The translations under genes were made by a program, and so were the position numbers. Below are positions 1-39,029 of a stretch of 64,000 nucleotides of DNA, piece after piece. Each line of letters starts with the position of its first letter. The first letter of the stretch is position 1. This stretch comes from Macrostomum lignano (taxonomy: Eukaryota). The notes under the pieces are model-generated. The model saw nothing but the letters and a program-made list of their open reading frames with translations, was not told where the DNA came from and made no database searches. Where the stretch lies: positions 1 to 64,000 of the forward strand of contig NIVC01002797.1 of assembly GCA_002269645.1 (NCBI GenBank), in the 5' to 3' direction.

Positions 1-169
1 TTTGCTTTCCAGAAATCGCCCTGTATTTAAACGTAAAACTCATTCTTTAATATTTAGAAATCGTCTTTAAAAAAATTATTAAAAAATAATATTATAAAAA
101 GAATCCTAAAATAGACCTAATTTATTATACTAAAAATTCATTCTAAAGTCGGCTTTCGAATTTTCTAAA

Positions 170-440
170 TCAGACTTCAAAAAGCATTTCAAAATCGGCC
201 TTCAAAAAGCATTTCAAATCGGCCTTTATAAAGCATATCAAATCAACCTTTAAAAAGTATATCAAAATCGGCCTTCAAAAAGCATATCAAATCAGCCTTC
301 AAAAAGCATATCAAATCGGCCTTCAGAAAGCATTATCAAACTCGGCCTTCAAAAAGCATATCAAATCAGCCTTCAAAAAGCATATCAAATCGGCCTTCAG
401 AAAGCATTATAAAACTCGGCCTTCAAAAAGCATGTCAAAA
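170..440. repeat. Intronic minisatellite, ~23-25 bp unit (AAAAGCATATCAAATCGGCCTTC)
   Basis: About 10 diverged tandem copies visible directly upstream of the first BIG3 exon. Confidence 0.85.
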
Positions 441-468
441 TCGGCCCGCTGTTCATCCCATTGCTCAG

Positions 469-617
469 GCGTGACCCACATCGCGGCACTGGAGCGCCAG
501 CTGGTCAGCAGCGGCCAATTCCAGTCTATGGGCGGCCTATTGGCCACGTCAACATCAGATTCCGTAGCGGACAGTCAGCTAGCCGGCTCGGACATTCCCG
601 CCCTTGTCGCTCGCTGG
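469..617 (+). CDS. ARFGEF3: ARFGEF3/BIG3-like, first visible exon (gene begins upstream of the window)
   Basis: Acceptor ttgctcAG at 467-468; open frame GVTHIAALERQL...IPALVARW; joins the next exon in phase 0 through a GC-AG intron at 618-654. Little recognisable homology in this exon itself. Confidence 0.6.
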
Positions 618-654
618 GCAAGTCGGCGGGCACAGCCTACTAACGCCCGCCCAG

Positions 655-1260
655 ACAACTAAAGTTGTAGCCGCTCTGGTCTCGGCAGCTGATCGCCTAT
701 TTGATGACGCGGCCCAGCTTCCTCTGGTATCTTTATTAGCTTTTGTTCGCGCCCTGTGCGACGTGTCGACCGATCTGGTGAGCTGCGGCGACAGCGGGCT
801 GGTCAGCCGGCTCTGCCAGCTGGTGCTTAGCGTGACCCAGTCTGAGCGGCTGCTCGCTCACGTGCTGTGCGTCTGGTCCATCGCTGGCGGCCATTTCACC
901 AAGGCCTGCTCGGAGCAGCGCACGGCTAAGACGGCCGTCAGCAGTTTGCACGAATGCACTGTGGCTCTGCTGCGCTGGCGACCGGAGCGGCCGCATTTCA
1001 ACATGCACGAGGCCGCTTTGAAGCCAGTGGAATGGCTGCTAGGCTTGGAGCTGTGCGATGCAGACACTCAGGATCAGCTGGTCTGCTGCGTGTGCGAACT
1101 GGTTGAAGCGTTTAGCCACGAATTGGGCAGCGGCTGGCGGCCCGTGTTTGCCGCGCTTCGTCACGTGCGCGTCGATTTTGCCGGCTCCGCTGCTGGGGAG
1201 CGGCACGCGGCCGCTGTTAGCGACGTGTTTCAGGCCTTTCTTGGCACAGATTCTACCAAG
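655..1260 (+). CDS. ARFGEF3: ARFGEF3/BIG3-like exon
   Basis: TTKVVAALVSAADRLFDDA, LELCDADTQDQLVCCVCELVE and SGWRPVFAAL match BIG3 motifs as I recall them (ADRLFEDA, LELCDEDVQDQVV, QSGWRPLFSAL). The donor at 1260-1261 is one base out of phase (see findings). Confidence 0.9.
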
Positions 1261-1412
1261 TAGGCTGCTGATTGACGGGGTGAGGGGTTGTAGCTAGTGA
1301 CGGACAGGTGACACGGGTTTTATGTGGCTAATGATGGAGAGGAGGTTGGATATGGCTAATGATGAACAGGTGAGACCTGTCTTTACTACAGTAGTAGTAT
1401 TTACCAAATTAG

Positions 1413-1670
1413 AGGGTTGTAGCCTAATGGTTAGAGAGTCGGACTCACGACTGAAAGGTCGGGGGTTCGATTCTCAGCCCATTTGGAGCAATTTGTGTTT
1501 TTTGAGCAAGACACTTAACTCTGCGTTGCTTCAGTTCACCCAGCTGTAAAATGGGTGCCAGCATTAGCTGGGGTAATTGAAGGTATGTGGCGACCCCCCA
1601 GTCCTTGGACTGAACAGCCGTACGCAGCCTTCAGCTAGGCTGAGCTGTCGGTTGCACATCTGCTCATTAT
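1413..1670 (+). mobile_element. tRNA-derived SINE with a CORE/Meta/Deu-like central domain
   Basis: A-box TAGCCTAATGG (1420-1430) and B-box GGTTCGATTCT (1464-1474), followed by TTGAGCAAGACACTTAAC...CACCCAGCTGTAAAATGGGTGCC, a typical conserved SINE central domain. The 3' end is approximate. Confidence 0.75.
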
Positions 1671-1724
1671 GACAGGTGTAATCAATTATTATTATTTCAA
1701 ATGATTTCATGTAAAAAATAGGTC

Positions 1725-2305
1725 TACTAATTGACAGGTAAAGAGGGGAGGCTACTAATTGACAGGTAGCGATAGGAAGGCTACTGATTGACAAGTAGAG
1801 ATAGGAAGGCTACTGATTGACAGGTAGAGATGGGAGTAGCTACTGATTGACAGCTAGAAATGGGAGGGGCTACAGATTGACAGGTAAAGATAGGAAGGGC
1901 TACTGATTGACAGGTAAAGATAGGAATGGCTACTGATTGACAGGTAAAGATAGGAAGGGCTACTGATTGACAGGTAGAGATGGGAGGGGCTGCTGATTGA
2001 CAGGTAGAGATGGGAGGGGCCACTGATTGACAGGTAAAGATAGGAGAGGCTGCTGATTGACAGGTAAAAATAGGAAGGGCTGCTGATTTGCAGGTAAATA
2101 TAGGAGGGGCTGCTGATTGACAGGCAAATATAGGAGGGGCTGCTGATTGACAGGTAAATATAGGAGGGGCTGCTGATTGACAGGTAAATATAGGAGAGGC
2201 TGCTGATTGACAGGTAAAGATAGGAGAGGCTGCTGATTGACAGGTAAAGATAGGAGAGGCTGCTGATTGACAGGTAAAGATAGGAGGGGCTGCTGATTGA
2301 CAGGT
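1725..2305. repeat. 30-bp intronic minisatellite (TGATTGACAGGTAAAGATAGGAGGGGCTGC), ~19 copies
   Basis: Direct tandem repeat; explains spurious ORFs 1781-2368 and 1854-2330. Confidence 0.95.
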
Positions 2306-2339
2306 TAACATAGCAGATGCAATACGCCAACGCACGCAG

Positions 2340-3200
2340 GTGCTGGCCAACGCCCTAGTGGACTGCATGCTCTGCCTGCTACGCTACGTCCGCGGCCCCG
2401 TGGCCGGCGACCCGGCGGCAGATGAAGACACGGACAGCGAGTCCGATTCGGACACGGGCGAACAGTTCGACTCAAATAGGTCCACTGGCACGTCAGTTGA
2501 TCCCGTCAGCTCAGCGCCGCTCTGCCTGCCAGCCCTGCGCCACTTGGCCACGGCTGCCGGCCTCCTTGGCGACATGGCGCGCATGCCGGCGCCGCCAGCT
2601 TTCAAAGGCGCCGATCGATTCGCCGCTGCTCCGTCAGCTGAATCAGCTTCGTCGTCGAGCGCCGCCGCCGCCGCCGTTAGCGACGGCTCCCCGGGCCGCA
2701 GCCTGGCCCAGCTGGTGCGTAGGTTCCCGCAGCACGACTGGCACCTGCCTGTGCCCGTGGCCTGCCCGGCTTTGCCGTCCGACGGCCCGGAGTCGCCGGC
2801 CGGAGCCGCTTCGGCGCCAGGCTGCGGTCCAAGCTCCGACCTGCTGGCCGTGTGGTGGCTGCTTATCGACGGGCTGCTGTCGGCCGCCTGGGAATCGCCA
2901 GCCGCTGCCCAGGCGTTCACAGCCGCCTTCGACCTGCTGCGATCCGGCCTGGCCAGCCCCGGCTGCGATGCCGTGCTGTTCGCCTTCCAGCGCCTGCTGC
3001 TGCCCCAGCTGTTGAAGCGTCTGCGCTGCTGTGCCGCCTGCGAGCGACCTTCGCGGGTGACGGCACTCCGGCAGGCCTGCGGGCTGACCACCGACCTGGC
3101 CGTGCACCTGCTGCGCGAGGCTGGCCCTGAGTTCGCGTCCGGCGCCGTGCAGAGCCTGCTGCATGTGCTCATCGACTGCGTGTCCAGCTGCTCTGAGCAG
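2340..3200 (+). CDS. ARFGEF3: ARFGEF3/BIG3-like exon
   Basis: Acceptor cgcAG at 2338-2339; VLANALVDCMLCLLRYVRG resembles BIG3 VFANAATSYIMCLMKFVKG; donor CAG|GTGCTT at 3201, phase 0. Confidence 0.88.
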
Positions 3201-3218
3201 GTGCTTACAATGTGGCCT

Positions 3219-3540
3219 CCCAGATCCTCAGTTGCTGGGCCAGCCTACCAGATCCTCAGTTGCTGGGCCACTACCTACCAGATCCTCAGTTGCTGGGCCA
3301 CTACCTACCAGATCCTCAGTTGCTGGGCCACTACCTACCAGATCCTCAGTTGCTGGGCCACTACCTACCAGATCCTCAGTTGCTGGGCCACTACCTACCA
3401 GATCCTCAGTTGCTGGGCCACTACCTACCAGATCCTCAGTTGCTGGGCCACTACCTACCAGATCCTCAGTTGCTGGGCCACTACCTACCAGATCCTCAGT
3501 TGCTGGGCCACTACCTACCAGATCCTCAGTTGCGGGCCCA
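3219..3540. repeat. 30-bp intronic minisatellite (CAGATCCTCAGTTGCTGGGCCACTACCTAC), ~10 copies
   Basis: Near-perfect tandem copies; same family as 23345-23590 (opposite strand) and 17493-17535. Confidence 0.95.
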
Positions 3541-3626
3541 ACTCCCAGAGTGTCAGTTGCTGAGCCACCTGGGGCTACAGCTAGTCACTTATTAGTTATT
3601 AAGTTTTTATCCAACCCCATTGCCAG

Positions 3627-3915
3627 GTGTGCCGGCTTGGCTGTTCCTGCCTGCGGCACTTCCTCATCTCATCGACGCCCTACCTGTCGGCCGAGCTGTG
3701 GACGGCCTGCTGCCAGGCCCTGCGCTCCGGCCTGCAGCTGTCCTGGGAGCCGCTGCTCCGGCTGGGCCTGGTGTTCTCGCGCCATTCCGACCAGTTTTAT
3801 GGCGATCTGGGCCACATCCGGGTGGCGGCCAGGCGGGAGCCGCGCGGACAATCGAGACGGATGTACCAGCTGGCTAGGCAGCTGTTCCTGCTGGATGGCC
3901 AATTCGACTTCTCCG
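3627..3915 (+). CDS. ARFGEF3: ARFGEF3/BIG3-like exon
   Basis: Acceptor gccAG at 3625-3626; VCRLGCSCLRHFL...ELWTACCQAL resembles BIG3 SRVGCSCIRYVL...MWRLACCAL; donor G|GTGAGC at 3916 is phase 1 and matches the acceptor at 17583. Confidence 0.9.
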
Positions 3916-5316
3916 GTGAGCTCTTGTAGTGCAGCCTGGGACGGGGCCAATAAGCTGCCAGCTATCAATGATTAGTGAGGATTTTATAGGCTGTACATTG
4001 TCAATCAGTGACTTTCGCCAATTTTGGTGGCTTTGTACTAGCAATCTGCGCCCCCCCCCAACCCCGGTTGGGTAGGCAACAAAGAAAGGTGAGCTTTGGC
4101 ATCGAAGCCTGCCTTAAAGCCCCTAGCTGAACCCTAACTCTAACTTTGATCTACCGTTGAATCTAGCGTTCAATTACAAAAAATAACTATTCTGAATTTA
4201 TTGTACTTAATTGCATGCCCGTAATTAAGGAATCAGATGAGTTTCACGATGCCTTTTTGAGTTGCTGTCACACAAACCCATGGTTAAAGAAAAAAGACTA
4301 ACACAATGAAAGACGCTAGCAAGCCAATGGTACAAGTGTTGCATGTCTAATACGGGGAACTATTGTGAAAATATTTGTTATGTGAGGCTTTTCCGCAAAT
4401 TTATTCTAGAACCTTTGTAGTATTATATAAAGCTCGTGTGAAGATCACTGCAGATAAAAAAACTATGACGGACACACACCCGTCTTCAGGTTTCAGATCT
4501 CAACAGCAGCCGTCTTAAAAGTAACATGAAAAAATAGAACGCTTTTACAGCAACGTTTAACATTCAACAAATAGCAACTAATGGCTACCCGGCAAAAAAT
4601 ATGTAAATTTTTAGACCGCAAATTTTGACCGCATGGCCCTATCTCACAAGAGTAACAAATACGGTCAAAAAAACTTGCCAGTAGTTACGTTTGGGGTCAA
4701 ACCTCGTTTTCCTTTGACCGCAAATCTCCATTTTTTGCGTATTTATTGCAGTCAAATTTGTCCATCGTTTTGCGGTCAGAATGTGGTCCAGATGTACTGT
4801 ATATCTCTCTGTCTCTCTGTGACTGAGCTCCATTTTTCCCTAAAGGAAGAGGAATGAGGAATCCGTGGAAGAGGAATCAACTGGTTAATCAAATGAATAA
4901 ATCATGAAAAGCTAAATCATAAACCGTGATAGAAAAGAACGGTAAAAACAGCAGAACGGCAAAGAACGGCACCGATATGCTTTCACTGTATTTGCTAGAG
5001 GTAAAACAAAAACGAAAACTACAAAAGTTGAGTGAAAGCAATTAAAACTAAAACAAATATTGGCTGTCAATGTTTACAGAAAAACGAGCATAAATGCCGT
5101 TTATAAGCAGAAGCATTCAGTTTTGGTGCAGTTTTTTTCAGGAGAAAGTCAGTCTGGAGACATTTGATTGAAGCTTTGATTGAATTCTAGGCTGACTGTT
5201 GCTAGAATTTTGAGGCGCGGGAAAAAATAAACCGCTTATTAAAATTCTCAGGTTGTGCTTTAATTTTGAGACTGACTTAACTCCTGAATATACTGCCACT
5301 TTGGGCGCACGTACAA

Positions 5317-6650
5317 TTAAGCTAGGAACTGGTGCAACAGCTCCACCTCAAAGTCGTGCATGTCACGCACATAACTGTTCGACGGGCTAGCAGAGGCTGT
5401 GGCGGCGCTGCCGACATGGCCAGTATAGTTGGCGTTCGACGGGCCAGCAGAGGCTGTGGCGGCGCTGCCGACATGGCCAGTATAGTTGGCGTTCGACGGG
5501 CCAGCAGAGGCTGTAGCGGCGCTGCCGACATGGCCAGTATTGCTACCAGCGGTGGAGGTCTTAGCTTTTATTACGGGGCACGCCCAGGCGCCTGCGTGCT
5601 GTTGCCGTGCAGCGCGCTGCAGTTCCCGCGGCTCCAGTGGGCACCCGATCTTCCGCATGAATCGCTCCATGTGACCAAGTGATGCGCAGTCGGCCGGAGT
5701 GCTCGGGCTGTTGCCGACCTTCCTGCGAGGGTCCGCACGAGCGCCCACTTGGCGATTTTTTTGCGCCGGTTTAGTTTCTCCACTTCAGCCGCATTCACGG
5801 CTGTCGCACTCCTGGCGCCGACCTACTTCTACCAGGACATAGGGCATGTCCTCTGCCAGAGGGACAAGGCCGGTGGACTCGGCTGGTTTGGGATAGAGAT
5901 GAGGGTGACCAGTCAGTCAGATGAGTTAGAACGATTGCTCTGTAAGTATTTGTAGATCTCACCTGGCGTACTGTGCGGCAGCACAGCGACCCGGTTGGCA
6001 CTCCGGCCCTCTCCACTAGCAGTGGCAGCAGTGTTATCGACCAGCATAGCTTCGGCTTCAAACGATAATCGGCAATCTGCATCAGGATCGATGTCGATTC
6101 CTGGTGCAACATGATCCTGTGGGCCATCGGTCGCCTGTAAAGAGGAAGCTGCCCGCTGCATGTGAGCGACTGCCTGTGCGCATCGCTTCTCCTGTAGGGC
6201 ACGAAGGCGCTGCTCCTCGGCTAGAAGCGCTTCCAGCGCCGTCTCCGACGCAACAGGTAAGCGACCTGTTGTTGGAGTTCATTAGCACGGGCATCTGCGT
6301 CCTGCAACTGGGCCGTACGGCGCTGCAACTCGGCCCTTGTGGCAGAAAAGGTGACACAAATAAATGACCGAAACGAAACGAACATCGACGTTGCAACAAC
6401 GAAAGGTGACAGCGGGTGTTCACTTATTAATTACCTTTGGCGTCGGCCAGGTCGCGGACGCGGGACACTTCGAGCTGCAGGTTGCGGCAGGCTGGACACC
6501 TTCGGGGCAGCTCGGGCTGTGGCACCTCGCGACGGCTAAGATTTGCGATCGCTAGCGCCTCCTCCCTGGTCGTTACCCGGCCCCGGAAATATGAGGTAGC
6601 AGAAATATTGTGGCCACAGTACGCTAGTCCGATTGTTCAGAAAAAAGCTG
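5317..6650 (-). pseudogene. Second ORF (TnpA/ORF2-like) of the CACTA element, spliced and frameshifted
   Basis: GC-rich coding-like blocks downstream of the transposase stop: branch and acceptor TGCTAACTTTCACAG (AG at 6649-6648), FLNNRTSVLWPQ, coiled-coil-like AELQRRTAQLQDADARANELQQQVAYLL, and ORF 5317-5748. The reading frame cannot be reconstructed uniquely. Confidence 0.5.
5378..5545. repeat. 57-bp tandem repeat x3 within ORF2 (minus strand reads GHVGSAATASAGPSNANYT)
   Basis: Direct repeat; its length is a multiple of 3. Confidence 0.9.
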
Positions 6651-6850
6651 TGAAAGTTAGCATGTAGCACTTTAACAAATTTATTAACGGTAAAGGTAAA
6701 CGGTAAACATAACTTCTTTATAAGCGGAGAGTAAGCACAGCGAAAACAGTGCAAATTAATAATTGAACATACGGCTTGAAACTATAAAGAGGAAAACAAC
6801 GGAACAACAGAATCAAACAGGGCAGTGGCTATTGCGTAATAAGTTTACAA

Positions 6851-9560
6851 TTACGACGTGGCCAACTGGGTATGCGGTAGCATTGCAATCGACGTCGGCG
6901 ACACGTCGCACGCGCCTAAGATGTCCGTCAGATTGACATCGACTGCATTGCCGAGGGCTTCTGTAGGGCCGAAAGGGTCGCACTGCAGGCGGCAAACATG
7001 CCAGCAGCGGCAACCACGGTGCTCCGTATCCGCCGACGACACGTTGCTCAACGCCTCCAAGGGGTCGGGAAGCAGTGCAACGGGCAGGAGCTTGCACGTC
7101 AGCCAGATGCCACCCAACTGGCACAGGGTGATAGCTTCAACGCGTGCGAAGTGCAGACCCTTCTGTCCGTCACCATAGAAGCCGACGAAGCTCGAGCACG
7201 CAGTGCGTGGGATGCACTTGGTTGCATTCCAACGCTCGATAAAGAGGCCGGACTGCGTCGACGCACTGCTCCACTGGTTCGCCATGCCATGGTGCCGTCG
7301 CAAGACAAACGCCGTTGACAACACGCATCTGTGTTGCCCGAGACGAAGCCTTCTGGGCGCGGTTCGGCTGCTGCAGTCCTGCGAACCTTTGTCAGCTGCG
7401 TTGCCACGTCTCGCTCAACGACATTGAAGACCTCGAGGTCTGTGTGGCGCGACGCGTGCAGCCGCCTGCGGAGTCGGCAATGCATGGTCTCAAAAATGCC
7501 GGCTGACTGGTGGTGCAGCGGACCGACCAAGTGCGCGAAGGCCTTCATGTGCTGGCACACCTATTGGAACGTTAAATCGTGCGGCGTTGTACGTATGCTA
7601 CATCTGCATGTCCTTTTTTCCTGGTGATAGTTGCATGCTTGGATATAAACTTTCTCACCATCTTACCTGGTGTGAGTTGTAGGTCATCGCTCGTTCGCTA
7701 TACAACTGGGCCAGCTTTGCGATGAAGTACAACAGCGAATTTCTGACGAACGGCAATTCGCGTCGCAGTAGACCGGAGTCCAGCGTCAGCCAAAAGATGG
7801 CGGTCGACAGAACTAGGAAGTGCTGGTAGTAGCGGTCGGGCAGAAATTCATGCAGTACCATGGGCCAAACGCCAGCAGCCGTGCTCGTGGCCGCGGAAGT
7901 GCGGCACCTCGCTGAGACTGCGGACTCGCTGCCGCTGCACAGATCTGGGACAGGAGCAGAGTTGCACTGTCTTATCGCATATTCAGGTGCGGCTGCAGAC
8001 CGCGGTGTACATACCTGGGCAGACGCACGCGACGCAGCCGCTCATCTACCGCTTGTCGGAGATGATAAATGTGCGCACCCGGCGCGGCGTTCGGATCAGG
8101 TCTCCTGACGTGTGGCAGAAACCATTGCCACATGTGCCAGCGGACCAGGCCCAAGCAGAGCTGATGGAGGTAGCACGGCGGGGTGCCACGGACGTAGTCA
8201 AAGCCGGACAGGTAAGCCAGTGGAGACAAACCCATTATGCCAAGGATGTCGGTGTTGGGTGCTGCTCCCTCAAGGCGCCGGCGCTCCGCAAGGGCCACTG
8301 AGTCCGGCATGTTGCGCAAGTCGGTTTGCGTACACCCAAGCCTCTCCGCAGAACGCCGCATTGAGGTGGACAGGTGGACGGGATAGTGGCGGCCGCCTCC
8401 CGGTAACGCTGCCGTCTTTACGTAACAGTTGTCGCAGCCGTATCTGTGTGGAGTTTAGAGGTTGGAACGAAATAATAGTAAAATTCTGGAATTACAGATT
8501 GACCCAAAACTGTTTAGAAGCGTCAGCACGTAGTACGTTTGTCGATATACATATGGGAGACAATTACTTGGCGGAGTGACTTCTCATACAAAGGGCATCC
8601 GCCCTTGCCGGAGCGTCAAACATAGCTGTTAACGGGTGGAGTCGCAGAACCCTCTGCTGACCAGTGGCGTCCACGTAAGCGACTCCATTGTGGCGAAGGT
8701 CGTTGAGAACGTCAACAACGACTGGCAAGAAGGCAAAAAACTTCAACTCTTTGCTACTCGCCCAGACGCCAAGGGTAATAACGAAGCGAAGCCGCTGCTT
8801 GCTATGTACCTCCGTGATACTGAGGTACACGGGACACACCTTGATAGGGGTGGTTCGATGGTAGGGGAAAGCGTCCGAGGCGACGGTGTAGGAGACGTCT
8901 TCGTTGTCTGCCAGACGTATTCCCTCCACGAACTCCAGTAAAGTACACTGCTGTGGACGTCTAGTACGCCTGAGGGTCACTAGGGCGGATTAACACAACT
9001 AAATAGAATACCCGGTACACCAGCTGCGCTTATTTCGAAATGCTGCTGTCATAATTGTGACAGACGTAATACCTGGAACTGGTATGCGATCCACAATCCG
9101 TCGCATCCGTCGCAAGCAATCCGTCGCATTCGATGTGCGTCCTAATGTGTCTCTTGACGTCGAGCACCCAGAAGTTGCCGACGTTGGTACTGCCACAGTG
9201 GGAGCACACATCACCCGGTCGACACGAGCCGGTCGAATTGCTGGCACACGCACTGCAGATGGTGAAGCACTTGGACGTACCCAACACACTTGTGGACGCA
9301 TTGGTGTACGATGTCAGTTTATAGACCGTGCGAGGCCAAGCGTTGTCTGGTACAAGAAGGCGCTGGACGCCATTCTGCGACAATGCAAGGTCGCGCCTGC
9401 CCACTTGAATCTCAGAGACCGCGTCGCCCAGGGTGACAGGCAGAGAGGCGTGGAAGGGAACGTTCAGGAGCTCCTCGGCAGCGCCAGCATTGACTGGGTC
9501 AGCGGCATTCTCGGCCGCGACAGCGGCATCCTCCAGCTCCGCGGCCTGCAGTAACTCACC
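6851..9560 (-). pseudogene. EnSpm/CACTA DDE transposase, multi-exon, with frameshifts
   Basis: N-terminal TLGDAVSEI...LALSQNGVQRLL...NAWPRTVYKL, then CxxC...CxxC. Catalytic-type motifs SDAFP (D ~8874), FDAPARA (D ~8616), HSAKYGCDNC, GFDYVRGTPPCYLH, MTYNSHQ and GPLHHQSAGIFE (E ~7490). GT-AG introns at 8567-8444, 8014-7945 and 7666-7561, plus probably one near 9072-8970. Frameshifts near 7862-7882 and ~7320. Confidence 0.88.
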
Positions 9561-10801
9561 CCGACAGTTGGCCAATGCGTGCACGAAATCATCGCCCGTG
9601 CAGCGAATAAAGCGGCAGGGCGAGACGGTTAGCAGCTGTATGGCCGACGGTAGTGGTTGGCGGGCCCGACCCGAGACACTGCCGTGGAGGCGGGCTGGAG
9701 CGTCTAAGCTGGCCAGGATTACCAGTTCGCGAAGCTCCGGCTGACGGGTAGCCAGCAGGCCTTCAGCTCGGAGCTTCTCGCACTGGAGCAGCGTCAGGCT
9801 CCTCAGCCTAGGCCACGCGGCGAGAAAAGAGCGGAGGCCGCGATCAGTCAATCGGACGCACTTTTCTAGACTGCATTACGCAGCTGGCTGCCGTTACGGC
9901 CGACGGCTGCAGACATTTGCGCGGCGAGTGCATCCGAAATAGCCGTACCGCCCACTGTCAACTCTCGCAGACTGGGCAACAACAGCCAGCAGTTCTGTAA
10001 TTTGTATTTTGTTCAGTACCAGCTTAAATACTGGGTGGATGAGTGGTAAAACAAGTAAGTATTACAAAGTTAGTGGGCAAGAAAGTATCACTATGCAACA
10101 ACTAAGTAACTACGCAAGTATTGAACACCCACCAACACTAGCGCCACATAAATCGACCACGACCAGGCCGCGCAAGCAAATCCCGCAATCCGATTGTAAG
10201 GCCGCGTCAATAACTCGGCAACGCCCGTCAAACGCCAGCCGTATCGATGAGAGCTGGCAAAGGAGGCTGCGGAACATTGGCTCGCAGGTAGAGGGGTCCG
10301 CCAGTGCTCCGACGTCGTCTATCTCGACGTGGGTGAGGCCTGGACAGCCGTCCACAATGGCCCTCAGAGCCTCGGCTGTCAGCATATCTCGGCAGTCCAG
10401 GAGGCGGAGTCTACGGAGTCGGTGACAGCCGCGGCCAACGGCGACCAGTGGGTTGGGTGCAGACTCGGTTTGATCAATCGCCGTTAGAAGGAGGTCCGGA
10501 GGTTGCGACAGTCGCGCAGCATGAGCGACAGCTGCTGCAGCGTGGCGTCCCTCGGTTGATCCAGGTAGCCAAACTCCACTTCCTCCACCGTAGCCGCCAG
10601 CCAAACCCTCAGACATGATAGTGCCGATGCGGATGGGTCCCCGGCCTCGATAAGTGCCGGATCCAGCCGCAAGCGGCGCCACAGCAGGGGCTGCATTGCG
10701 ACATCCAGGAAGCGGCGATTCACGTAGGCGCATTGCATAAGGCTCTGAACGTCGAGCTCCGCGAAAATCTGCGTCAGTATCTCGCATGGCAGTGCGTCCA
10801 T
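9560..10801 (-). CDS. F-box + leucine-rich-repeat (FBXL-like) region, apparently the N-terminus of the transposase transcript
   Basis: ATG at 10801: MDALPCEILTQIFAELDVQSLMQCAYVNRRFLDVAMQPLLWRRLRL fits the F-box consensus. FBXL-type LRRs: GCHRLRRLRLLDCRDMLTAEALRAIVDGCPGLTHVEI, PSLRELTVGGTAISD, SLEKCVRLTDRGLRSFLAAWPRLRSLTLLQCEKL. Intron from ~10132/10136 to 9995. One-base frameshifts near 10497 and 9875. Confidence 0.85.
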
Positions 10802-10860
10802 GTTTAGCTGCAACAATGTTTAATGTCCGGGTCGATCTCATGCTCCTGCTCATTCTCTAG

Positions 10861-10870
10861 CTATATATAG
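10861..10870 (-). promoter_or_regulatory. Candidate TATA box of the F-box-transposase transcript
   Basis: CTATATATAG about 60 nt upstream of the F-box ATG, inside the element's 5' end. Confidence 0.4.
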
Positions 10871-13257
10871 CCTACGTGCCCATGTACTTTCCTATAGTTC
10901 TCCTACGATAAGTCTTATGTTCCAGCGAAAAGAGAAAAAGGAACTCTCAAAATATGTCGCTGTGCGCAAACGAACGCTTCTTCCGTAGTTACAGAATACA
11001 ATTCATTTATTTATTTTCATACAGACAATAAGTCTCGCAATGTGCAGGTACAAACCAAAGTAGCGCGCGCAAGGATACATCTGTTGGAAAGTGAACAAGT
11101 GACAAATGGTATTGGGGCCACATTTTGACCGCATCTGACCGCAATCCGATCTTTTTTTACCGCATTTCAACCGTATTTGACCTCATCAATTTGACCGCAA
11201 AAAACGGTCGAGGTGAACGTTTTTGGCCCGTTTCTTGACCGAATCTGACCGCAATTCGACCGTTTTTGACCGTATTTCGAACGTAATTTGACCTCATCAA
11301 TTTGACCGCAAAAAACGGTCGAGGTGAACCGTTTTTTGGCATGGTACGCGAAATCCGGTCAACTGCGGTCGAAGTGCGGTCACAAAGCCTAATTATTTTT
11401 TGCCGGGTAAGCGTCTTAAAGATTAACCAAAGCTGCATATTAGCTGATAAAAATAAATTCCCAACTGTTGTGTTGTGGCGCAAACAGACAACGATTAATT
11501 ACTTGTGAGCAGTCGAAATTTGAATGATTCTAAGTAAATAAGTAAATGATTATAAGTAAATAAACTACGAGTATTTAAGGTCTGAGAACATCTAATTCAA
11601 TGACCAGGTTCCAACAGTAATTGGAGCCCCAGAAATTATCAAAAGCAGCAATTACTTCTCCACTTGCCTCCTCCGCCAGCCTCTGACGCTTGGAGTTCTT
11701 GTCTGGATTAATTATTTTATCTTTAAGGTAACCTGTTCCAAACCTTTGACGCAGAAAGTCCCGAGCAAAGTGTTTCGGGCTGGCAAATTAACCCGATCCG
11801 TGTTCAGGCCTTCAGTGTGGTTGGCTTCATTGAAGCCGAAGCTCTAGAAGAATAGGTAGGTTGGTATGCTCTAAAAAGGCATCATTGTCGATGGTATTCC
11901 ACTAGAACAAAGGCTTACTGACTTTCTTTTCTTGGAAGCTTGAGAAAGGCCTGATTTCCCAGGCTGAGATCCAAAAGTCTTCCGGCAGGCTGCAAGTTTC
12001 GCAATCTCCTTTTGAAAGCCAAAGGCACTAACAATGTCAACTGACTGTTTTACTCGTAATGGAGCACCCTGGCACTTAGTGGCTTGATGATTTCAGCTTC
12101 ACTGCTGCTAGAGCTACTACTTGAGCTAATATTTTAACTCTACGAGCTTGTATTGCAATCAGACTCCAATTCAAGACCTTTTACTCTCACTCTCAGAATC
12201 ACAATCAACTTTAGTCTTAATGTGATGAACCAAGGGAAGAATCCCAAGCGAAACTTCTTATTTCCTTGAGCGCTGCTGTCGCAGAGTCGGCTGAGATCAG
12301 GCTGATCGAGCGTACAATACACGATGGCCTCTTGCTAGGTGTATGACGCTGAGCTGATTGGGGTGGGAATCAGCATACGACACTCCTAATCCTGGCTCAG
12401 CTCTATGCAAGCAAATCCCGAAAAGACAGACAGTAGGAGTGCTCACGATTTGCTCGCTGAACAACCGGGGGCATTGTTGTTCGCTGAAGGGCAACGGCCC
12501 GGCCCGGTCGTCGGCTCGGATTCGGTGTAATAAAGGCGTCTCCTTTATTTATAATCGCAGCCCCAGGACACGTAGGCGCAACGGGGCAGCGTTGACCGAA
12601 AAGGGTCGAGCGCGAGGAAAGCAGGAGCCGTTGAGGCCTCATATAAATGTTCTAGGCAGGCCAGGGCAGGAATAAAAAGGGGGTTCTGTCAAACAGACGG
12701 ACTCGCAGCCAATCAGAGTGAGCCAACTGGCTAAGCCAGCGCCGCGGGATACATTGCAAAAGGGTCGGGGAGGGGTTGACAGTACTAAAATACAAGACGA
12801 GAGGGGGGAACACTGCCCAATCAGGCACCGGTCGGCTTACGCAGGCGCCAGAGGGGTGGGACACAAACACAATGGGCGCAAGGACCACTAAAGTAGGAAA
12901 GGACGCAAGACTCAGAATTGGTGAAAATATCATTGGATGCCGATTTTTCAATGTTTCTCCTGTGTACACTTTTGAACGTAAGATGCTTATTCTGTCGCAG
13001 AATAGGCATTAAAATATGCTCTTTGTATTAACACATCGATAAGTTGACAAATATTTTGAACTGTTAAAGTCTACTTCATTCAAAAGTACATCTAGTATCC
13101 ATCTAGAATTATTGATTTTATTATGTCAGAACTAACAAAACAAAACATGTCATAAGAGACCAAAAAGCAAGGTACTCGTAGTATAAAAAGGGGAAGGGGT
13201 AAAATAATATTGCCCCCACAGAGCGAAATATTGCAAAAATACAAAAAATCAATGTAC

Positions 13258-15070
13258 AGTAGAAACTTTCGGAGCCTGCGCGCATTAGAAGTAGACTGAG
13301 AAACCTTCGTTTCGCACAAGTCCTTTAAAAACATTCGATAGACGTCTGCATGGATATGCGAGCGACCAGGTCGGAACTGATTTGAATGGATTTGATTTGA
13401 ATGTCAATAAATGTTTCAAAAACTGAGCAAAAACGTCCAATCACACGATTCAAACGAGTTGAGTGCAGCGAATTGAAATACGAATAGTCGTAGCACAATA
13501 GAGCGAAAAAGCAACCATTGGGGAGGATTCACCAGCTTTCCTCGAGATAAGACTCGTAAATTCACTGCATGCCTTACTATCTACAGTGTGACGAAAATCA
13601 GCAGAATCAGATTGAGGGATATCTTCCTTGCGTGCAGTGTAGCCACATATATAATAAAGTGCAGCTCCTTCTGTCTCAGAAACAGCAGCTTCATCAACTG
13701 ACAAATGGTCAATGGCTGTGAGTTCAGCATCACTTAAGTCTTCCTCGCTACAACATGCAGATTGTGGTTGCTCTGGTATTTTGGCATCAAGCTAGGCATA
13801 CAACTCCATCCGAAACAATTTTGCAGTCAGGAAAACTTGCTCAACAGAGATAAAATAGCACCCTCCATGTCCTTGCCTATAGATTGAGAACTCGCCCTCA
13901 AGGGGGTCAGATTGGAAAGCACCTGGAAGTGGAAATACTAGCTTGGTTTTTTATGTATTTGCTATTCTATTCTTACCTAGAAAGACAAAGGTGAATAGCT
14001 GCTTGGATAGCAGGCATTTCGAAAGCTCCACAAGACCTCTCCAGATTTGAATGACAGCTTTCTGTGTCTCTGTTGTGAGAGAACGCTGCCGTGCGGGACC
14101 CCGCCCTCAGCCATCTGCTCCGTCATGGAAGCAAATTGAAGAAGATAGTTTAAAGCTATGCGAGGCATCTGACACAATTGGAGCTCGTCTGGGGTGATTC
14201 AGAGTCCGGCGATCTTACATTGACGATCTTCAAAATTCAACGACAGAATGGACAAATTCGGCAGTGTCGCTATTACCATTGATGCGCAGTGTTGCAACTG
14301 TTTTTTTCGTTGAGCACATTTAATACGATATAAACTTCCTGGCGTTCAGGAGGCACAGGATTGCATGCCACCGCTGTGAGGGTGGTAGAACGAACTACCA
14401 GTTGGTGAGACTGTTGCTCAATTTGAACAATGTGCTGCCATCTGGCACGGCGTAGAGGTTGCTCAGGTGTACAGCGAAAATCAATTTCTCCATGTCATTG
14501 TGTTAGCCAATTGTTGCGAATGTTTTTAAGCAACCGCATAGCAGAAACAATGAAGTGTAAAGGCAGATGGATTAATTGCCTTCCATGGTGACGCAGGTGA
14601 TGGGTTCAACAACTGGAAGCAATTACGGTTCGTAAAGTGGTCATCACAAACCAAGCTCAGGAAAATGCCACCACATACATGGATTATTGCAATAAGTCGC
14701 ACAAGTTGCTGGTGAAAAAAACGGGATTCAAGCTGTAGATTGGTATAAGACGAGCACCCGTGAGTGGTCTAACCATAATGGCCAAAACTGTACGTGCTAG
14801 CTTAGTTGAGTCATCTTCGGCATGCCCAACTATGTGACAGCCACGAAGTCGAGTGGAAGATAGAACATAAACCTCATCAAAATTGATGGAGCAGAGCTTC
14901 TGTGATGTGGACACCACTCTAAATTGTGCTTGCACTAATCTCCGATAGTCCATATCGTTTCCAAAAGGGCCCCAACTGCCAAGATAGCACCTTAATGTAG
15001 CAGCGTGTGGTAGTGTGGTAGTCAGTAGGTCCTTCAGTGCGCGATATCCATTTCTGCGAGCTAAGTACGG
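13258..15070 (-). mobile_element. Degenerate P-element-superfamily transposase
   Basis: In the expected order: GYRALKDLLTTTLPHAATLR, CSINFDEVY...IVG...ARTVLAIMVRPL, LKNIRNNWL, FQSDPLEGEFSIYRQGHGGCYFISVEQV, ALYYICGYTARK and terminal RRLRKF. Many frameshifts; no THAP domain or TIRs found. Confidence 0.75.
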
Positions 15071-16233
15071 TCTTTCAGTCGTTAAAATGTCATTTGATGT
15101 CTATCGCTCACTATGTTAAAGTCATTTGCAACTGGCGAAGTATGAACTGTTGCCTCTATCTTCGCCTTCGGATTGTTATTAAATGAATATATCCTTTAAA
15201 GTAGATCTGTTAGATTATGGATAAATTGTTTAAATTACCAAAGAAGAGACATTAACATTTTGTTTGAAATATTCTTCTTGAGGACATTATGTTATATATA
15301 ACTACATAAGGGTCTATTAGCTAGACCGATGTGGACAAGCGTGGTACCTCGCGGGTAGGCTACTGGTTTCTATTGCTAAGGATTTTACTAGTGGATTTAC
15401 TTCCTACTGGTTTGAGACTTTTGGTAGTTCGCTGCCACCAGGTTCCTGCTGTTCCCTAATTCTAGCTTTAGGTTTAAGAACGCAGTCAGGACACCGATAA
15501 AGTTAGTTAACACAAGTTTAATAAAAGAAGTAAATTAATTGTTACGGTACAAAAGTTGGTTTGCTTTTACATTAACTCCCTATTTTAAGTTTCCCCGTTT
15601 ATTTCCCCGTTCCCCGGGCAAGACTCCCAGTTATAGATTTGTTGTTGTTGTTGTTAAAACGAGGTGCCGTCGAAACCGGCGCGGGTCAGTTCCGAAGAAC
15701 TCTGCCGCAGTTATATTTTGTATTTGATCGAAAGAATTAAAAATATTTACAAGATTTCGATTTGAATATTTATACGAATATTGAAATAAAAATATACATA
15801 TATAAAACTATTTTTCAATAGTTTGCAGTATTTTGCACGCATTTGGGGATAAAAAAGAGGGGAGGGAAATCCCACACAAAGAAGGGATCTAAAAAAACAG
15901 GACATCTAAAAAATACGTGCTAGGTATTTGAAGGCCTATTGAGAATAAAAGCAAGACATTTAAGTAAAAAATAGAGATTAAAAATGCAATAGCGCATATT
16001 TGAATTTAGCAGTAAAGGTGTAAAATATAGCGATTATGAATATTTGTAAAAAACAGTAGGATAAAAACACAGTTTGAGCAGTATAAAAAAACGAGCGCAG
16101 GGAGACTAGAGATTACCTAATCAGTCCTAGTGTCTGATCAGATCAGCCGATCTCTGTCTCAGGCAGCAAGTTTAGTTTTATTAATTGCGTTTCAGAGCGT
16201 AGTCACTTCCGGTTTGGGAGGCTGGTGGCCAGC

Positions 16234-16860
16234 CTAACGCTGGAGTGGGATTCCCCTGTTTCTTTCCCGACGCCTCATGGCATCCCAGAGGACATTGAGG
16301 ACGGGGGTTCGGCCCGGAGCCCGAGGGGCATCCGGCTCAATGTGGAAGCTGTGGAGCTTGGCTGCCCTCATCTTGAGCAGCCAAGCCACCCCCAGCTGCT
16401 TGACCCTGTCTGCGAGCATCGGCATACCTGCCAGCTTGTGCAGGTATTCGATGCTGATGTAGGATGGCACACCATAGCAGATACGGAGAGCCAGGTTTTG
16501 AATTTTTTGCAATTTGATTTGGTTAGTCGCACAAATTTGGCTCAGGATTGGCGCTCCGTAGGTGAGAGCGCTTTCTCCGTATGCCCTGTACAGCATTCTG
16601 AGGGTGGTGCTACTCAGCTTTGTCATTTTTGCAATTCTGCACAGTGACATTACAATGGCTCTGCTAGTATCTGCCATGTTGTCCACATGTTTGTTCAGGC
16701 AGAGGCTCTGGTCAAGGAGGACACCCAGGAATTTCACCTCCTGACAGTACGGAACTTCAGTGTCCCCCAGATACAGTTTGGGTCGCAAGTCCATGCGCCT
16801 AGTGGGTTTGTAGTTGAAAGCGATTGTTAAACGAGTGGTACGAATGTAGCGCACCTCGGA
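16234..16860 (-). mobile_element. 5'-truncated non-LTR retrotransposon (I/Jockey-like), C-terminal RT region
   Basis: LYLGDTEVPYCQEVKFLGVLLDQSL (thumb, K[FY]LG), LYRAYGESALTYG, KLQKIQNLALRICYG, LHKLAGMPML. Confidence 0.85.
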
Positions 16861-17583: not shown

Positions 17584-17982
17584 ACTCGGTCCTGCAGGCC
17601 AAAGAAGACGAGCGACCCCTGGTGTTTCTGCTGTACCGCTCCGAGAAGGACTCCGAGCCGGAGGCGCGCATCGAACTCGGCGCCATCGTACGCGGCCTTC
17701 TGGCCCAGCAGTTGCTGCTGCAGACAGTCGGCGAGCTGTCCGGCCAGGCCAAGCCCGTGTCCGCGGCCGACTATGTGCAGGGCTCGCACGCGATGCAGCT
17801 GGCGGCTGCACTGCTGGAGTGCTACAATCTCAGCAGCCAGTTCGACCAGCGGCCCGGTCTGAAGTTTCTGCTACAGAAGGCCTGCAGAGTGCGGGTGGCC
17901 GCTAATCTCTATAAGCAGGCCGGATTAGCTGTGGGGTACCTGGCTGGCTTGCTCATCCCTTTGGCTGTGCGGCACTCGCTTG
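17584..17982 (+). CDS. ARFGEF3: ARFGEF3/BIG3-like exon
   Basis: Acceptor ctaatcAG at 17582-17583, phase 1. GLLAQQLLLQ and FDQRPGLKFLLQKACRVRVAANLYKQA resemble BIG3 SLLSHQVLLQ and FDTSPGLKCLLKKVSGIGGAANLYRQS. Donor G|GTAGGT at 17983. Confidence 0.92.
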
Positions 17983-18049
17983 GTAGGTTAAATTGCTCAT
18001 GCGTGCTCCATAAGATTACCGCCCGAAATTGCTTGTATGAGTCACCCCT

Positions 18050-18862
18050 GACCTGCTGCTGACCCCATGAGTCTGACCTGCTGCTGACCCCATGAGTCTG
18101 ACCTGCTGCTGACCCCATGAGTCTGACCTGCTGCTGACCCCATAAATCTGACCTGCTAACCCCATAAATCTGACCTGCTGCTGACCCTATGAATCTGACC
18201 TGCTGCTGACCCTATGAGTCTGACCTGCTGCTGACCCTATCAATCTGACCTGCTGCTGACCCCATGAATCTGACCTGCTGCTGACCCCATCAATCTGACC
18301 TGCTGCTGACCCCATGAATCTGACCTGCTAACCCCATAAATCTGACCTGCTGCTGACCCTATGAATCTGACCTGCTGCTGACCCTATGAGTCTGACCTGC
18401 TGCTGACCCTATCAATCTGACCTGCTGCTGACCCCATGAATCTGACCTGCTGCTGACCCCATCAATCTGACCTGCTGCTGACCCCATGAATCTGACCTGC
18501 TGCTGACCCCATGAATCTGACCTGCTAACCCCATAAATCTGACCTACTGCTGACCCCATGAATCTGACCTGCTGACCCCATCAATCTGACCTACTGCTGA
18601 CCCCATCAATCTGACCGACCTGCTGCTGACCCCATGAATCTGACCTGTTGCTGACCCCATTAATCTAACCTGCTGCTGACCCCATGAATCTGACCGACCT
18701 GCTGACCCCATGAATCTGACCTGCTGCTGACCCCATAAATCTGACCTGCTAACCCCATAAATCTGACCTACTGCTGACCCCATGAATCTGACCGACCTGC
18801 TGCTGACCCCATGAATCTGACCTGCTGCTGACCCCATCAATCTGATCTGCTGCTGACCCCAT
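18050..18862. repeat. 25-bp intronic minisatellite (CCCCATGAATCTGACCTGCTGCTGA), ~32 copies
   Basis: Direct tandem repeat filling most of the intron. Confidence 0.95.
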
Positions 18863-18882
18863 TAATCGCCCCTGACCCGCAG

Positions 18883-20896: not shown

Positions 20897-22892
20897 AGTA
20901 GCTGTCATGCCGAGCTTTTTTCTCAAAGCGCAGATCTCTAGTCACAAAGTAATTTTATTTTTAGTCAGCCAGGCAAAGCCAGCTTAATTGATAATTTTGA
21001 TAATTATTATGCAGCTTTTCTTTTGTCTCCTTGTGCGTCCTGTGTGCAGCATTTGTTGTGCAACAAAGACCTACTGTTGTTATAATGATTAATCTTATTA
21101 TTATCAAGTCAAATCTTGCATTATTTTCATCTCTCTCTCACTAATCTATACGCTCGTATTGGTGTTGGCTACTTTTGTTGGATATTTTGGTAATTTAATC
21201 AGACAAAATTGATTGTGTACCATCAAGCAGAGTTTAATATCAAATTCAACATAATAATCATGATATTGATTTACTATGACTGTTAGTGATTTTGTCTTGT
21301 TTATTCCAATTTAAATCCAAATGCATTTTTGGTTCCGCATGTTGTCCGCGTCCGCGTGTCCAATGGCTTCTTTCTCCGCTAGGTTAGTTGTTTTTCCTTT
21401 GTTTTCCATTTTAACTCTTAGATTTGACGAGTAAGATATTATATTCCTGTTATTGATATAAAGTGAGCCACCTTGTATTTTCATCAGCAATTATATTAAT
21501 TTATTGGTGTTTCGGTGTTTTCTGTCTTCTTTTCCGTGCAAGCAAGTTTTGAGCAGATTTCTCAGCCATAATCAAGAATATTGTGTCTCGTGTCTGTTAT
21601 AAATATAATGCATTATATACGCAGCCTCCCTCGCGCCTTGCGGGAAAGAGATGTGCATATTAGCTAATATTGAAATGTCGGCTTAATGTAGATGCTAATT
21701 GAAACCATACTTCAATGTATATATGTGATATACTATTAATAATTCATAACTTATATATATATATATATATTTGCTTTATACCCCAGGACAGCAATAGCCT
21801 ATACAAAAGCAAAAGGAAATGTGCGAAACGGGGACGCTAAGCAAGCCAGATATTAACAAATTTTAAGCGAAAAACAAATAATAACAAAAAGATGGCCTGG
21901 AAGGCAAAACGAGGCGGAGGGTCAGGCAGCGAAATAATATACAAAGCTGTTACTGTGCAGTGCAGTAGTAAACTACTCGCAGTAGTGCGCAAAGGACATG
22001 GACACGCGATGATTGGAGCATTGGAGGTGTTAATTTTACTGTTAATACGGCAGCACCGCCTAACCTGAAAGCTGGGTGAGAAAGCTCAGTTATTTTGCTA
22101 TTAAATAAGCATTCACTAGTCACATAAAAAACAGTACATGATGTATATATATTATCTAATACATTCGATTAAATCCTGTATATATTTAAAAGTACATTTG
22201 TGCAATCACTGCTTAAAATGGGTCGCTTATTCGCCAAGTGCCAGAAGCATGCAGAAGTGCAATGCTCAGAAATTTGATTGAGTTAATTTAACATTCATTC
22301 CCTCACACCGGACATAAAGTGCCACCAGCCAACAGCGGTGCAATTGTTGGGGAAATTGCATTCAAAACATTTAGCTAGAAATGTATGTTCAACTTCTAAA
22401 AAACAAGCCAAACAATTGGCGGTTTAAAAAGACAAACAAGCAACATTGCAGAAAGACGATAACTATACAGAATCCAAAAACTGCTACTAATAGTATTATT
22501 AGTAATCAAATAAAATTAACAATAACAAGCCGAAGAGAATTGCAAATCAGAAATTTCATGTTATCTTCATGTATCAGTCAGTTATGTGTGAGTGTCTAAA
22601 TAACAGCGATAATGACAGTCAAGACAAGAGACAGAAAAGTCAGTAAGAGAAAAAAAGCAGAAATTCTGGGCAGTAGCAGTAGCAGCAGCATACCAAAGAG
22701 ATTCTTTGCTGAGCTAAAATTGCATGTGTCAACTGTTAAAAAATATAATAAAAATGCGCCAAATTTAAACAAAAAGTAAAAGATATTATTTGCACATTAT
22801 ATGAAAAAACCTGCACTGTTCTTCTACTTAAAGTAGCAACGACATTTTAAATGTTTTAAAATAAAATTTATTAATTTGAATTTAAATGTTGC

Positions 22893-23253
22893 TCAATTGC
22901 TGGAACTGCCGCTAGCCGAGCTACCGCCGCAGGCTGCAGCGGCCGCGGCGGCCTCGTAGGCTTTGACCTCGACAAAGATCAGCTGCTTCCATTGGTCGAC
23001 AGTGAAGTCGCGAGTGTCAACCGAGTGATCGTAGCGCTGCGGTGGGGCGCAGTTAACTTCCGAATCGTCGTACCACATGTTGATGTAGGGGTGCATGAGC
23101 GCCTCGTCCACTGAGATGCGGCGCAGCGGGTCGACGACCAGCATGCGGCCGAGCAGGTCGCGGGCCATGCCGGCCGTCAGGCTGCGGTGCTCCGGGCTGT
23201 CTGGCGGGAAATAGTCGTTAGGGAACAGCTGCTCGAATGGCCACGGCTGGTAC
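22893..23253 (-). CDS. JNK: JNK (c-Jun N-terminal kinase) exon 5, terminal
   Basis: Acceptor tctctAG at 23255-23254; (K)YQPWPFEQLFP...ARDLLGRMLVVDPLRRISVDEALMHPYINMWYD; TGA at 22893. Confidence 0.97.
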
Positions 23254-23344
23254 CTAGAGATGGGTACAAATGAAGGTCAGATTTAACAGAAAATAATTGT
23301 TTTACATTTTTAATTGATATAGGTATTTAGGAGAGCCGAATTGG

Positions 23345-23590
23345 CCCAGTAACTGAGGATCTGGGAGGCTGGCCCAGTAACTGAGGATCTGGGAGGCTGG
23401 CCCAGTAACTGAGGATCTGGGAGGCTGGCCCAGTAACTGAGGAACTGAGAGGCTGGCCCAGTAACTGAGATCTGGGAGGTTGACCCAGCAACTGAGGATC
23501 TGGGAGGCTGGCCCAGTAACTGAAGATCTGGGAGGCTGGCCCAGCAACTGAGGATCTGGGAGGCTGGCCCAACAACTGAGGATCTGAGAA
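23345..23590. repeat. 28-bp intronic minisatellite (CCCAGTAACTGAGGATCTGGGAGGCTGG), ~9 copies
   Basis: Tandem repeat in JNK intron 4; reverse-complement relative of 3219-3540. Confidence 0.95.
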
Positions 23591-23649
23591 TATTGCTATA
23601 ATTACAGATGCGGCAGCCCAGGCAGCACACGCAGTGGGGGGGGCACTCA

Positions 23650-24006
<357 letters not shown>

Positions 24007-24253
24007 TTATGAGGTGTTTATTTATATCATATTTCTTGGTGTGAACTCGGCAACAGGGAAGCTTGGTGACCCCTTTACTCGCGCTGAGACGTGCAACAGA
24101 AGTTATGCGATTTCATACTTAAATCATACAAAGTGCCGTCACCTAATGTACCATGGGAGCTTAAGATTATTTAGCTTGTACTAATAATGTACTATGAGAG
24201 GCTAACAGGCTGTTAGGTATATATTTGTACTTCACAAGCAAGCAAAATTTCTA

Positions 24254-25239
<986 letters not shown>

Positions 25240-25269
25240 CTATAATCTGTTGCGATGCAGCGATGGCTA

Positions 25270-25530: not shown

Positions 25531-25614
25531 CGGTAAACTGCTTTCTTTGACAATGCAGACGGGAATAGCATAGAAAGTGCACTTATAAAACTCAGCACAG
25601 TCGGAAACCACTCA

Positions 25615-25776
<162 letters not shown>

Positions 25777-38957: not shown

Positions 38958-39029
38958 TTCATAGAGTACAATTTTTTTAATTAAAGCTTTTCAACGTCAG
39001 GAAAACTAAAAGACTTTTTAAAAAGAAGC

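Follow-up and report, generated by a model that had tools for sequence, protein, structure and literature searches.

Animal relatives of the CACTA transposons, the TRC elements, have been reported from Schistosoma mansoni, Tribolium and Aedes; they encode a transposase with a Transposase_21 domain, give rise to multiple spliced transcripts and, in SmTRC1 of S. mansoni and the insect TRCs, have CCC ends and 2-bp duplications, the duplication being present in 7 of 14 SmTRC1 copies (PMC1636069). The signature D, D, C-x2-C, H-x3-H-E defines the CMC(T) group of transposases, EnSpm/Mirage/Chapaev/Transib (PMC12730594). Gene capture by CACTA elements (Pack-CACTA) is documented (PMC6379663). Pieces of an F-box gene have been found in a telomeric retrotransposon of Drosophila (PMC13534243). 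Host F-box genes that have captured domains of transposable elements (TEs) are also described, namely F-box::Mariner-HTH in Caenorhabditis and F-box::CxC7/KDZ in zebrafish, together with two unvalidated predicted proteins that combine an F-box with an En/Spm-like domain, A0A8T2DEV0 from Arabidopsis suecica and B0E0H5 from a fungus of the Agaricomycetes (PMC12062965). Here we describe a 6.8-kb DNA transposon in a 64,000-nt stretch of the flatworm Macrostomum lignano (contig NIVC01002797.1, positions 1 to 64,000; hereafter the window) in which an F-box/leucine-rich repeat (LRR) module lies in one reading frame with the transposase.

F-box proteins bind SKP1 and bring substrates to SKP1-CUL1-F-box (SCF) E3 ligases, with LRRs binding the substrates. 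An F-box-like motif in the polerovirus P0 protein destabilizes AGO1, and the GALA proteins of Ralstonia combine an F-box with CC-type LRRs. In the text of the open-access literature, we found no description of a DNA transposon bounded by terminal inverted repeats (TIRs) that carries an F-box/LRR module fused to a full transposase. The account that we consider probable is that a 5′ fragment of a host FBXL gene was captured and joined in frame to the transposase, and that the copy in which we see it is now dead.

Results

Between the inverted ends of the window copy, a single frame is common to the F-box/LRR module and the transposase. A sequence-only reading of the window had proposed that an uninterrupted frame joins the last LRRs to the transposase N terminus, and this proposal holds, as the minus-strand frame from 9875 to 9033 (281 codons, 843 nt) is open and runs from the last LRRs through an acidic linker into the N terminus of the transposase. 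The frame has no ATG, as that reading had said, but the F-box ATG at 10801, which it took as the start, opens a frame that is broken by frameshifts. In a tblastn search with P0001, the protein nearest to the window transposase, transposase similarity begins at 9476. Neither a repeat nor a break in composition was seen at the junction between LRRs and transposase. The wider layout that had been proposed, with TATA, ATG, F-box, FBXL-type LRRs, acidic linker, transposase and a second gene (ORF2) on one strand, is largely present on the minus strand, which holds the entire coding capacity of the element.

The F-box that follows the ATG is well supported, scoring 48.8 bits against PF12937 (cut-off 24.3; E = 5.9e-13) and 26.2 bits against PF00646. 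When the 372-residue protein obtained by correcting two frameshifts was compared with the PDB using phmmer, it matched human FBXL2 (6o60_C, E = 8.4e-13), FBXL17 (E = 1.3e-5) and, more weakly, SKP2. The FBXL2 and FBXL17 alignments span the F-box and the CC-type LRRs and continue unbroken across both corrected sites, and the FBXL2 alignment follows the LRR array, in which we count about 11 repeats by eye, for ~300 residues. Pfam bore out the domains expected by the sequence-only reading only in part, since the F-box passed, no Pfam LRR model matched the corrected protein, and the transposase scored 12.7 bits directly against PF02992 (Transposase_21), below the threshold of 28.6. When the ORF pieces were scanned one by one, the F-box was the sole Pfam match. 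A single-sequence AlphaFold2 model of the corrected F-box/LRR protein had a predicted local distance difference test score (pLDDT) of 36, too low for the model to be used. Since the LRR region retains a GT-AG intron, the F-box/LRR fragment appears to be genomic, and we rejected an origin as a retrocopy.

FBXL homology stops at ...FVHALANCRG, where a further repeat has only begun (CRGELLQ; by eye). Exactly at this point, on the boundary between the LRR homology and the acidic linker, the minus strand from 9570 to 9556 reads CGG GGTGAGT TACTGCAG GCC, which contains a consensus splice donor (CGG/GTGAGT) and a consensus acceptor (CTGCAG) 14 nt apart. The pair may be what remains of the intron that came next in the captured gene, or it may be able to serve in alternative splicing. 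An LRR array that ends at a donor-like site with another repeat just begun looks like a captured genomic fragment rather than a designed domain boundary.

The copy is no longer intact. Four frameshifts interrupt it, the F-box/LRR part and the transposase having two each. In the first, CGGGAC is read as CGGAC at 10496-10498, leading to a stop at 10486-10484; the second is a 1-nt loss at 9876/9877, with a stop at 9868-9866. Together with the lesions at 7865-7871 and 7351-7381 in the transposase, these contradict the suggestion that the fusion can be read from the ATG at 10801. Because the open reading frame (ORF) is interrupted four times, the window copy is predicted to be unable to make the fusion protein. 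The exons of a JNK-like host gene in the same window show no frameshift over ~1.1 kb, which indicates that the assembly is not obviously full of indel errors and that the frameshifts are probably real. G+C content at third codon positions (GC3) is 0.69 in the F-box/LRR part, 0.70 in the transposase and 0.70–0.81 in host exons, so that a test of GC3 and CpG composition, in which all three are alike, did not discriminate between a host-derived and a transposon-resident origin of the F-box/LRR module.

Is the F-box a trait of a transposon family? The relatives that we compared are 33–44% identical to the window transposase. The five closest full-length ones have N termini of their own, made up of 100–230 acidic residues of low complexity and in many cases including a basic stretch; in four of them, the first residue is Met. 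Neither F-box nor LRRs occur in P0001, P0003-P0006 or P0153, all of which have their own Met or their own N-terminal sequence. No F-box or LRR match was obtained in a Pfam scan of 19 relatives picked for long N- or C-terminal extensions, in a phmmer search with the F-box/LRR part against all 162 fetched proteins, or by tblastn against three related loci (L001-L003) that included 2.6–3.8 kb upstream of their transposase genes. A 466-aa query covering the F-box/LRR part and the junction found no homologue in a collection of 5.8 billion proteins, a search whose word prefilter means that only close relatives are excluded. Exact look-up of four window ORFs in public assemblies returned no record, and metagenomes scanned with the junction ORF and, separately, with a transposase alignment yielded no confirmed relative. 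No copy of the same family was retrieved from the collections searched. With F-box and LRRs missing from every relative examined (~160 transposases and three loci), the comparison says no for the wider clade, as represented by these relatives; the module would be specific to the lineage of the window element.

The element itself is well delimited, occupying 4586-11409 of the window with the TA at both flanks included. The 15-mer TACCCGGCAAAAAAT has exactly two occurrences in the 64-kb window, inverted with respect to each other, at 4586-4600 and 11395-11409, when ~0.2 matches with ≤2 mismatches would be expected by chance. Beyond these perfect 15 nt, the inverted repeat reaches 35 nt at 80% identity. 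The motif TTGACCGCA and its complement are confined to the inside of both element ends and occur nowhere else in the window. The TIRs had thus been rightly called intact, and assignment to the EnSpm/CACTA superfamily is held by the homology of the transposase to Transposase_21 and CACTA-related proteins. The ends are a different matter. They had been taken for those of a CACTA element, but they read CCCGGCAAAAAATATG (CCCGGC...GCCGGG), which is neither CACTA/CACTG nor CA..TG, and literal membership of CACTA was rejected. A CCCG start is also found in relatives, with ends CCCGCTGAAAAAATCG in L001 (Tara) and CCCCGCTGGAAAATGG in L002 (M. lignano). As for the proposed TA duplication, TA does stand at both flanks of this single copy but, being self-complementary, serves equally well as a 2-nt extension of the TIR, and no 2-bp flanking duplication was found when we looked for one in L001 and L002.

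Since the termini begin with CCC and the transposase is homologous to Transposase_21, as in the elements described in PMC1636069, and the flanking TA is compatible with this, the element is best filed on sequence grounds in the CCC-ended animal TRC branch of the CACTA/Transposase_21 superfamily. It shares with SmTRC1 and animal TRCs the Transposase_21-type transposase, the CCC start of the TIR, an intron-containing transposase gene and relatives in flatworms; unlike it, SmTRC1 has a 54-bp TIR and no F-box/LRR (PMC1636069). Plant En/Spm elements also have two genes, short subterminal repeat arrays and a DDE core with C-x2-C and H-x3-H, but they end in CACTA and make 3-bp duplications, whereas the window element has CCCGG ends and TA flanks.

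P0001, whose 863-residue ORF is intronless and comes from a Tara Oceans contig, is 41% identical to the window transposase over 99% of the query. A Bemisia protein that carries both PF02992 and PF13960 matches the window transposase with E = 1e-8. An exhaustive search with P0001 gave 4254 relatives, of which the closest come from M. lignano, the source of the nearest named ones, and from marine metagenomes; many relatives pass the gathering score for Transposase_21, and more distant members pass the Pfam thresholds for Transposase_21 (PF02992), DUF1258 or DUF4218, and close members of the divergent clade to which the window transposase belongs have no Pfam match. In a six-member alignment, CxxC...CxxC, D, D, CxxC and HxxxHE are invariant, including D190, D276, C295/C298, and H454 and E455 within HFRGHE. 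This agrees with the CMC(T) signature defined in PMC12730594. We conclude that the window transposase is homologous to Transposase_21, as judged from these sequence comparisons.

The transposase gene has four GT-AG introns (9072-8970, 8567-8444, 8014-7945 and 7666-7561), the last of which matches the position of an intron in an M. lignano relative. An alternative acceptor for the third intron at 7935, which would avoid the frameshift, was rejected, as homology to P0001 (SVQR...HFRGHE) supports the acceptor at 7945 followed by the frameshift. Also rejected was the idea that the window transposase lacks ~30 N-terminal residues of P0001, since the tblastn gap is only 6 residues. ORF2 is collinear with, and weakly similar to, ORF2 of L001, the best piece being 6510-6442 (E = 8e-4). 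The features of the element are listed in Table 1.

Table 1. Coordinates of the features of the transposon, in window positions
Feature	Position	Strand	Remarks
Left end	4586-4620	+	TA at 4586-4587 (possible 2-bp target duplication), then TIR starting CCCGGCAAAAAAT
Left subterminal repeats	4619-4790		TTGACCGCA / TGCGGTCA motifs in both orientations
ORF2, second gene	5320-6640	-	Split over several frames; 57-nt tandem repeat (x3) at 5377-5547
Transposase, last exon	6851-7560	-	Stop codon 6851-6853; frameshift between 7351 and 7381
Transposase exon	7667-7944	-	H-x3-H-E catalytic motif (HFRGHE); frameshift 7865-7871 directly after the motif
Transposase exon	8015-8443	-	C-x2-C motif (YGCDNCY) and CYLHQ
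Transposase exon	8568-8969	-	First and second catalytic D (SDAF, FDAPAR)
Linker and transposase N-terminal region	9073-9557	-	Acidic linker (9557 to ~9477), then invariant CxxC...CxxC; same exon and frame as the last LRRs, no ATG
F-box/LRR exon 2, part	9558-9994	-	LRR 7-11; 1-nt frameshift 9876/9877
Intron in LRR region	9995-10136	-	GT-AG, 142 nt, 37% GC (AT-rich)
F-box/LRR exon 1	10137-10801	-	ATG 10801, F-box, LRR 1-6; 1-nt frameshift 10496/10497
TATA-like motif	10862-10869	-	TATATATA; candidate promoter element only, 61 nt 5′ of the ATG
Right subterminal repeats	11109-11374		Include a 111-nt tandem duplication (11125-11336) rich in TGACCGCA
Right end	11375-11409	-	TIR ending ...ATTTTTTGCCGGG, then TA at 11408-11409

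Several observations were made on the relatives. In L001, 3.8 kb (97-3923) with subterminal repeats spaced ~153 nt apart separate the left end from an intronless transposase ORF; we found no recognizable gene in this interval, and long 5′ regions seem typical of the clade. On M. lignano contig NIVC01003000.1 (L002), two copies of a related element lie in the same orientation 11.16 kb apart, at 10001-15461 and 21856-26617. The second is 5′-truncated, and a single annotated 'gene', P0153, covers both. Other M. lignano models in UniRef (P0006 and P0157-P0162; 1200–1800 residues) join the transposase to the ORF2 product, which the source names C2H2-type. These joined models may be read-through annotation or real alternative products.

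Outside the element, plus-strand exons at 604-1263 (Sec7-like_HDS, E = 2e-7) and 17622-18062 (a weak match to BIG2_C) flank the insertion. Because the element lies between these two exons, it is most likely placed antisense in an intron of a BIG/Sec7-type gene for an ADP-ribosylation factor guanine nucleotide exchange factor (ARF-GEF). The JNK/MAPK8-like kinase gene mentioned above (25713-22965, minus strand) has five clean exons that are 55–88% identical to a human JNK1 probe, and a 25-nt minisatellite at 24600-25046 fills one of its introns. Such arrays are dense throughout the window, with units of 16–30 nt and up to 144 copies (for example at 39024-42315, 45707-46727, 57340-59965, 18048-18867, 1724-2313 and 62246-62829); several read as long spurious ORFs, and those at 39024-42315 and 45707-46727 have an identical 23-nt unit. 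A 350-nt satellite at 31657-33011 (3.8 copies, 93% identity) overlaps an ORF at 31369-31962 (minus strand) that has no Pfam match. Two further ORFs, 16234-16854 (minus strand) and 30750-31352 (plus strand), look by eye like reverse-transcriptase or retroelement remnants, with no Pfam match at E 0.001. CpG observed/expected is ~1.0 in the transposon and in the host exons of the window, which suggests that there is little or no germline CpG methylation in the host organism.

Discussion

How does this element relate to other meetings of F-box genes and transposons? As in Pack-CACTA and Pack-MULE elements, an intron-bearing gene fragment lies between transposon ends and contributes to a chimeric ORF; Pack elements, however, are non-autonomous and encode no transposase, whereas the window fragment is fused to a retained transposase gene (PMC6379663). 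Host F-box::TE genes also combine an F-box with a transposase-derived domain in a single polypeptide, but they are immobile and have kept only a DNA-binding piece of the transposase (PMC12062965), in contrast to the window element, which retains the complete transposase along with ORF2 and both ends but whose ORF is broken. With both TIRs, the subterminal repeats and ORF2 in place and a broken ORF, the locus does not look like a domesticated host–transposase fusion gene. The Drosophila telomeric element resembles it in being a TE with part of an F-box gene (fragments of a CG12520 homologue), but is a retrotransposon whose fragments are not reported to be fused to its enzyme (PMC13534243).

In the account that we favor, the window contains a copy, young yet already defective, of a CCC-ended CACTA/EnSpm-Mirage-Chapaev (Transposase_21) transposon of the TRC type, in which a genomic 5′ piece of an FBXL-type gene would have replaced the first 100–230 codons of the transposase. 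The captured piece would run from the start codon through the F-box and ~11 LRRs and include one intron; the segment that it replaced would have held the transposase's own Met and a basic patch, and the outcome would be an in-frame chimeric ORF. The likeliest origin, we infer, is a Pack-CACTA-like capture at the DNA level through aberrant excision or repair between nearby insertions. The window copy would either have depended on transposase from other copies or have decayed once it was inserted. If capture is correct, there should be a donor gene with the same first intron and with a second intron that starts GTGAGTTAC after ...ALANCRG. Until other copies say otherwise, we regard the F-box module as a passenger.

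Several of our findings sit uneasily with capture of a passenger. The two modules are joined in frame and the transposase lacks an ATG, which is exactly what a functional fusion predicts; we estimate that a random junction would look like this in ~14% of cases (1/3 for the frame multiplied by ~0.4 for 27 codons without a stop, given the base composition). Once single-site corrections are made at the four frameshifts, there is no nonsense codon in the 366 F-box/LRR and 755 transposase codons that we scored and, because these ~1120 corrected codons are free of nonsense, the progenitor ORF may still have been open in the very recent past. Loss of the transposase is normal for Pack-type elements; this one retains ORF2 and the transposase from its conserved N-terminal region to the stop. 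The equal GC3 of the two modules gives no sign of a recent foreign addition, although host exons are similar. Neither a donor FBXL gene nor any close homologue was found in the protein collection searched, and the host derivation of the fragment is inferred.

These points raise the possibility that the progenitor family encoded an F-box-LRR-transposase protein of ~1,150 residues, translated from the F-box ATG, and that the window copy decayed recently. The F-box could then dock SKP1/CUL1, with the LRRs or the transposase bringing a substrate to SCF, either a host silencing or repair factor or the transposase itself, as a self-limiting form of turnover. Besides the open, ATG-less exon that leads from the LRRs into the transposase and the freedom from nonsense codons, such a protein would fit with an F-box far above the Pfam threshold, LRRs that align with FBXL2 over ~300 residues and a TATA-like motif 5′ of the ATG within the element. 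By analogy, viruses and bacteria deploy F-box proteins (polerovirus P0, Agrobacterium VirF and Ralstonia GALA), and the logic would be the same if the fusion is functional, with a selfish agent supplying an SCF adaptor. TEs with anti-silencing genes are known as well, such as the TET/JBP genes of fungal TEs (PMC12730594). Since the sole known copy has four frameshifts, the module is absent from every relative examined, the prefiltered search of 5.8 billion proteins returned no homologous fusion and the LRR array is apparently cut at the start of a further repeat beside a donor-like site, we consider a functional progenitor fusion unlikely. That there is a whole family of animal CACTA-type elements whose F-box-LRR-transposase uses host SCF against a restraining host factor, or for its own stability, we regard as more doubtful, and hijacking of SCF against silencing or control of transposase turnover is speculation.

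The F-box/LRR part might instead be expressed alone, through alternative splicing of a single 5′ transcript as in En/Spm and SmTRC1, or work as RNA, giving rise to small RNAs that target the F-box gene from which it came. SmTRC1 and other CACTA-type elements derive several products from one transcript by alternative splicing (PMC1636069), fragments of PIWI-interacting RNA (piRNA)-pathway genes and of an F-box gene are present in Drosophila telomeric TEs (PMC13534243), and the consensus donor falls precisely where LRR homology stops. We identified, however, no stop codon or polyadenylation signal that would delimit an F-box/LRR product, and we hold a separate product to be improbable. It is also conceivable that the chimera was never mobile, the F-box/LRR sequence having been joined to a resident copy after insertion or by misassembly. 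We see only a single copy, minisatellites, which are prone to misassembly, are extremely abundant in the window, and the 5′ part of the transposase itself is gone, as it would be after a deletion. Yet the F-box segment has an intact end with its subterminal repeats on one side and the transposase on the other, the junction falls within a clean 843-nt open frame with no repeat or composition break, and the two termini, TA flanks included, match perfectly over 15 nt. Such an artefact or rearrangement in situ therefore seems to us very improbable. Capture of an FBXL 5′ fragment by the transposon remains the explanation that we prefer.

If the functional fusion were nonetheless true, it would be the first case of an SCF adaptor that is carried by a transposon and fused to the transposon's own enzyme; it would join the use of F-box adaptors by viruses and bacteria to subvert host ubiquitination to the anti-silencing genes of transposons and would provide a directly testable case of counter-defence or self-regulation for a DNA transposon. 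If capture is the correct explanation, the locus documents an autonomous-type animal CACTA-related element with the 5′ half of an FBXL gene in frame with its transposase. Our comparisons also add a CCCG-ended clade, found in Macrostomum and marine metagenomes, to a poorly described animal branch of the superfamily. Captures such as this one would be raw material for host–transposase fusion genes.

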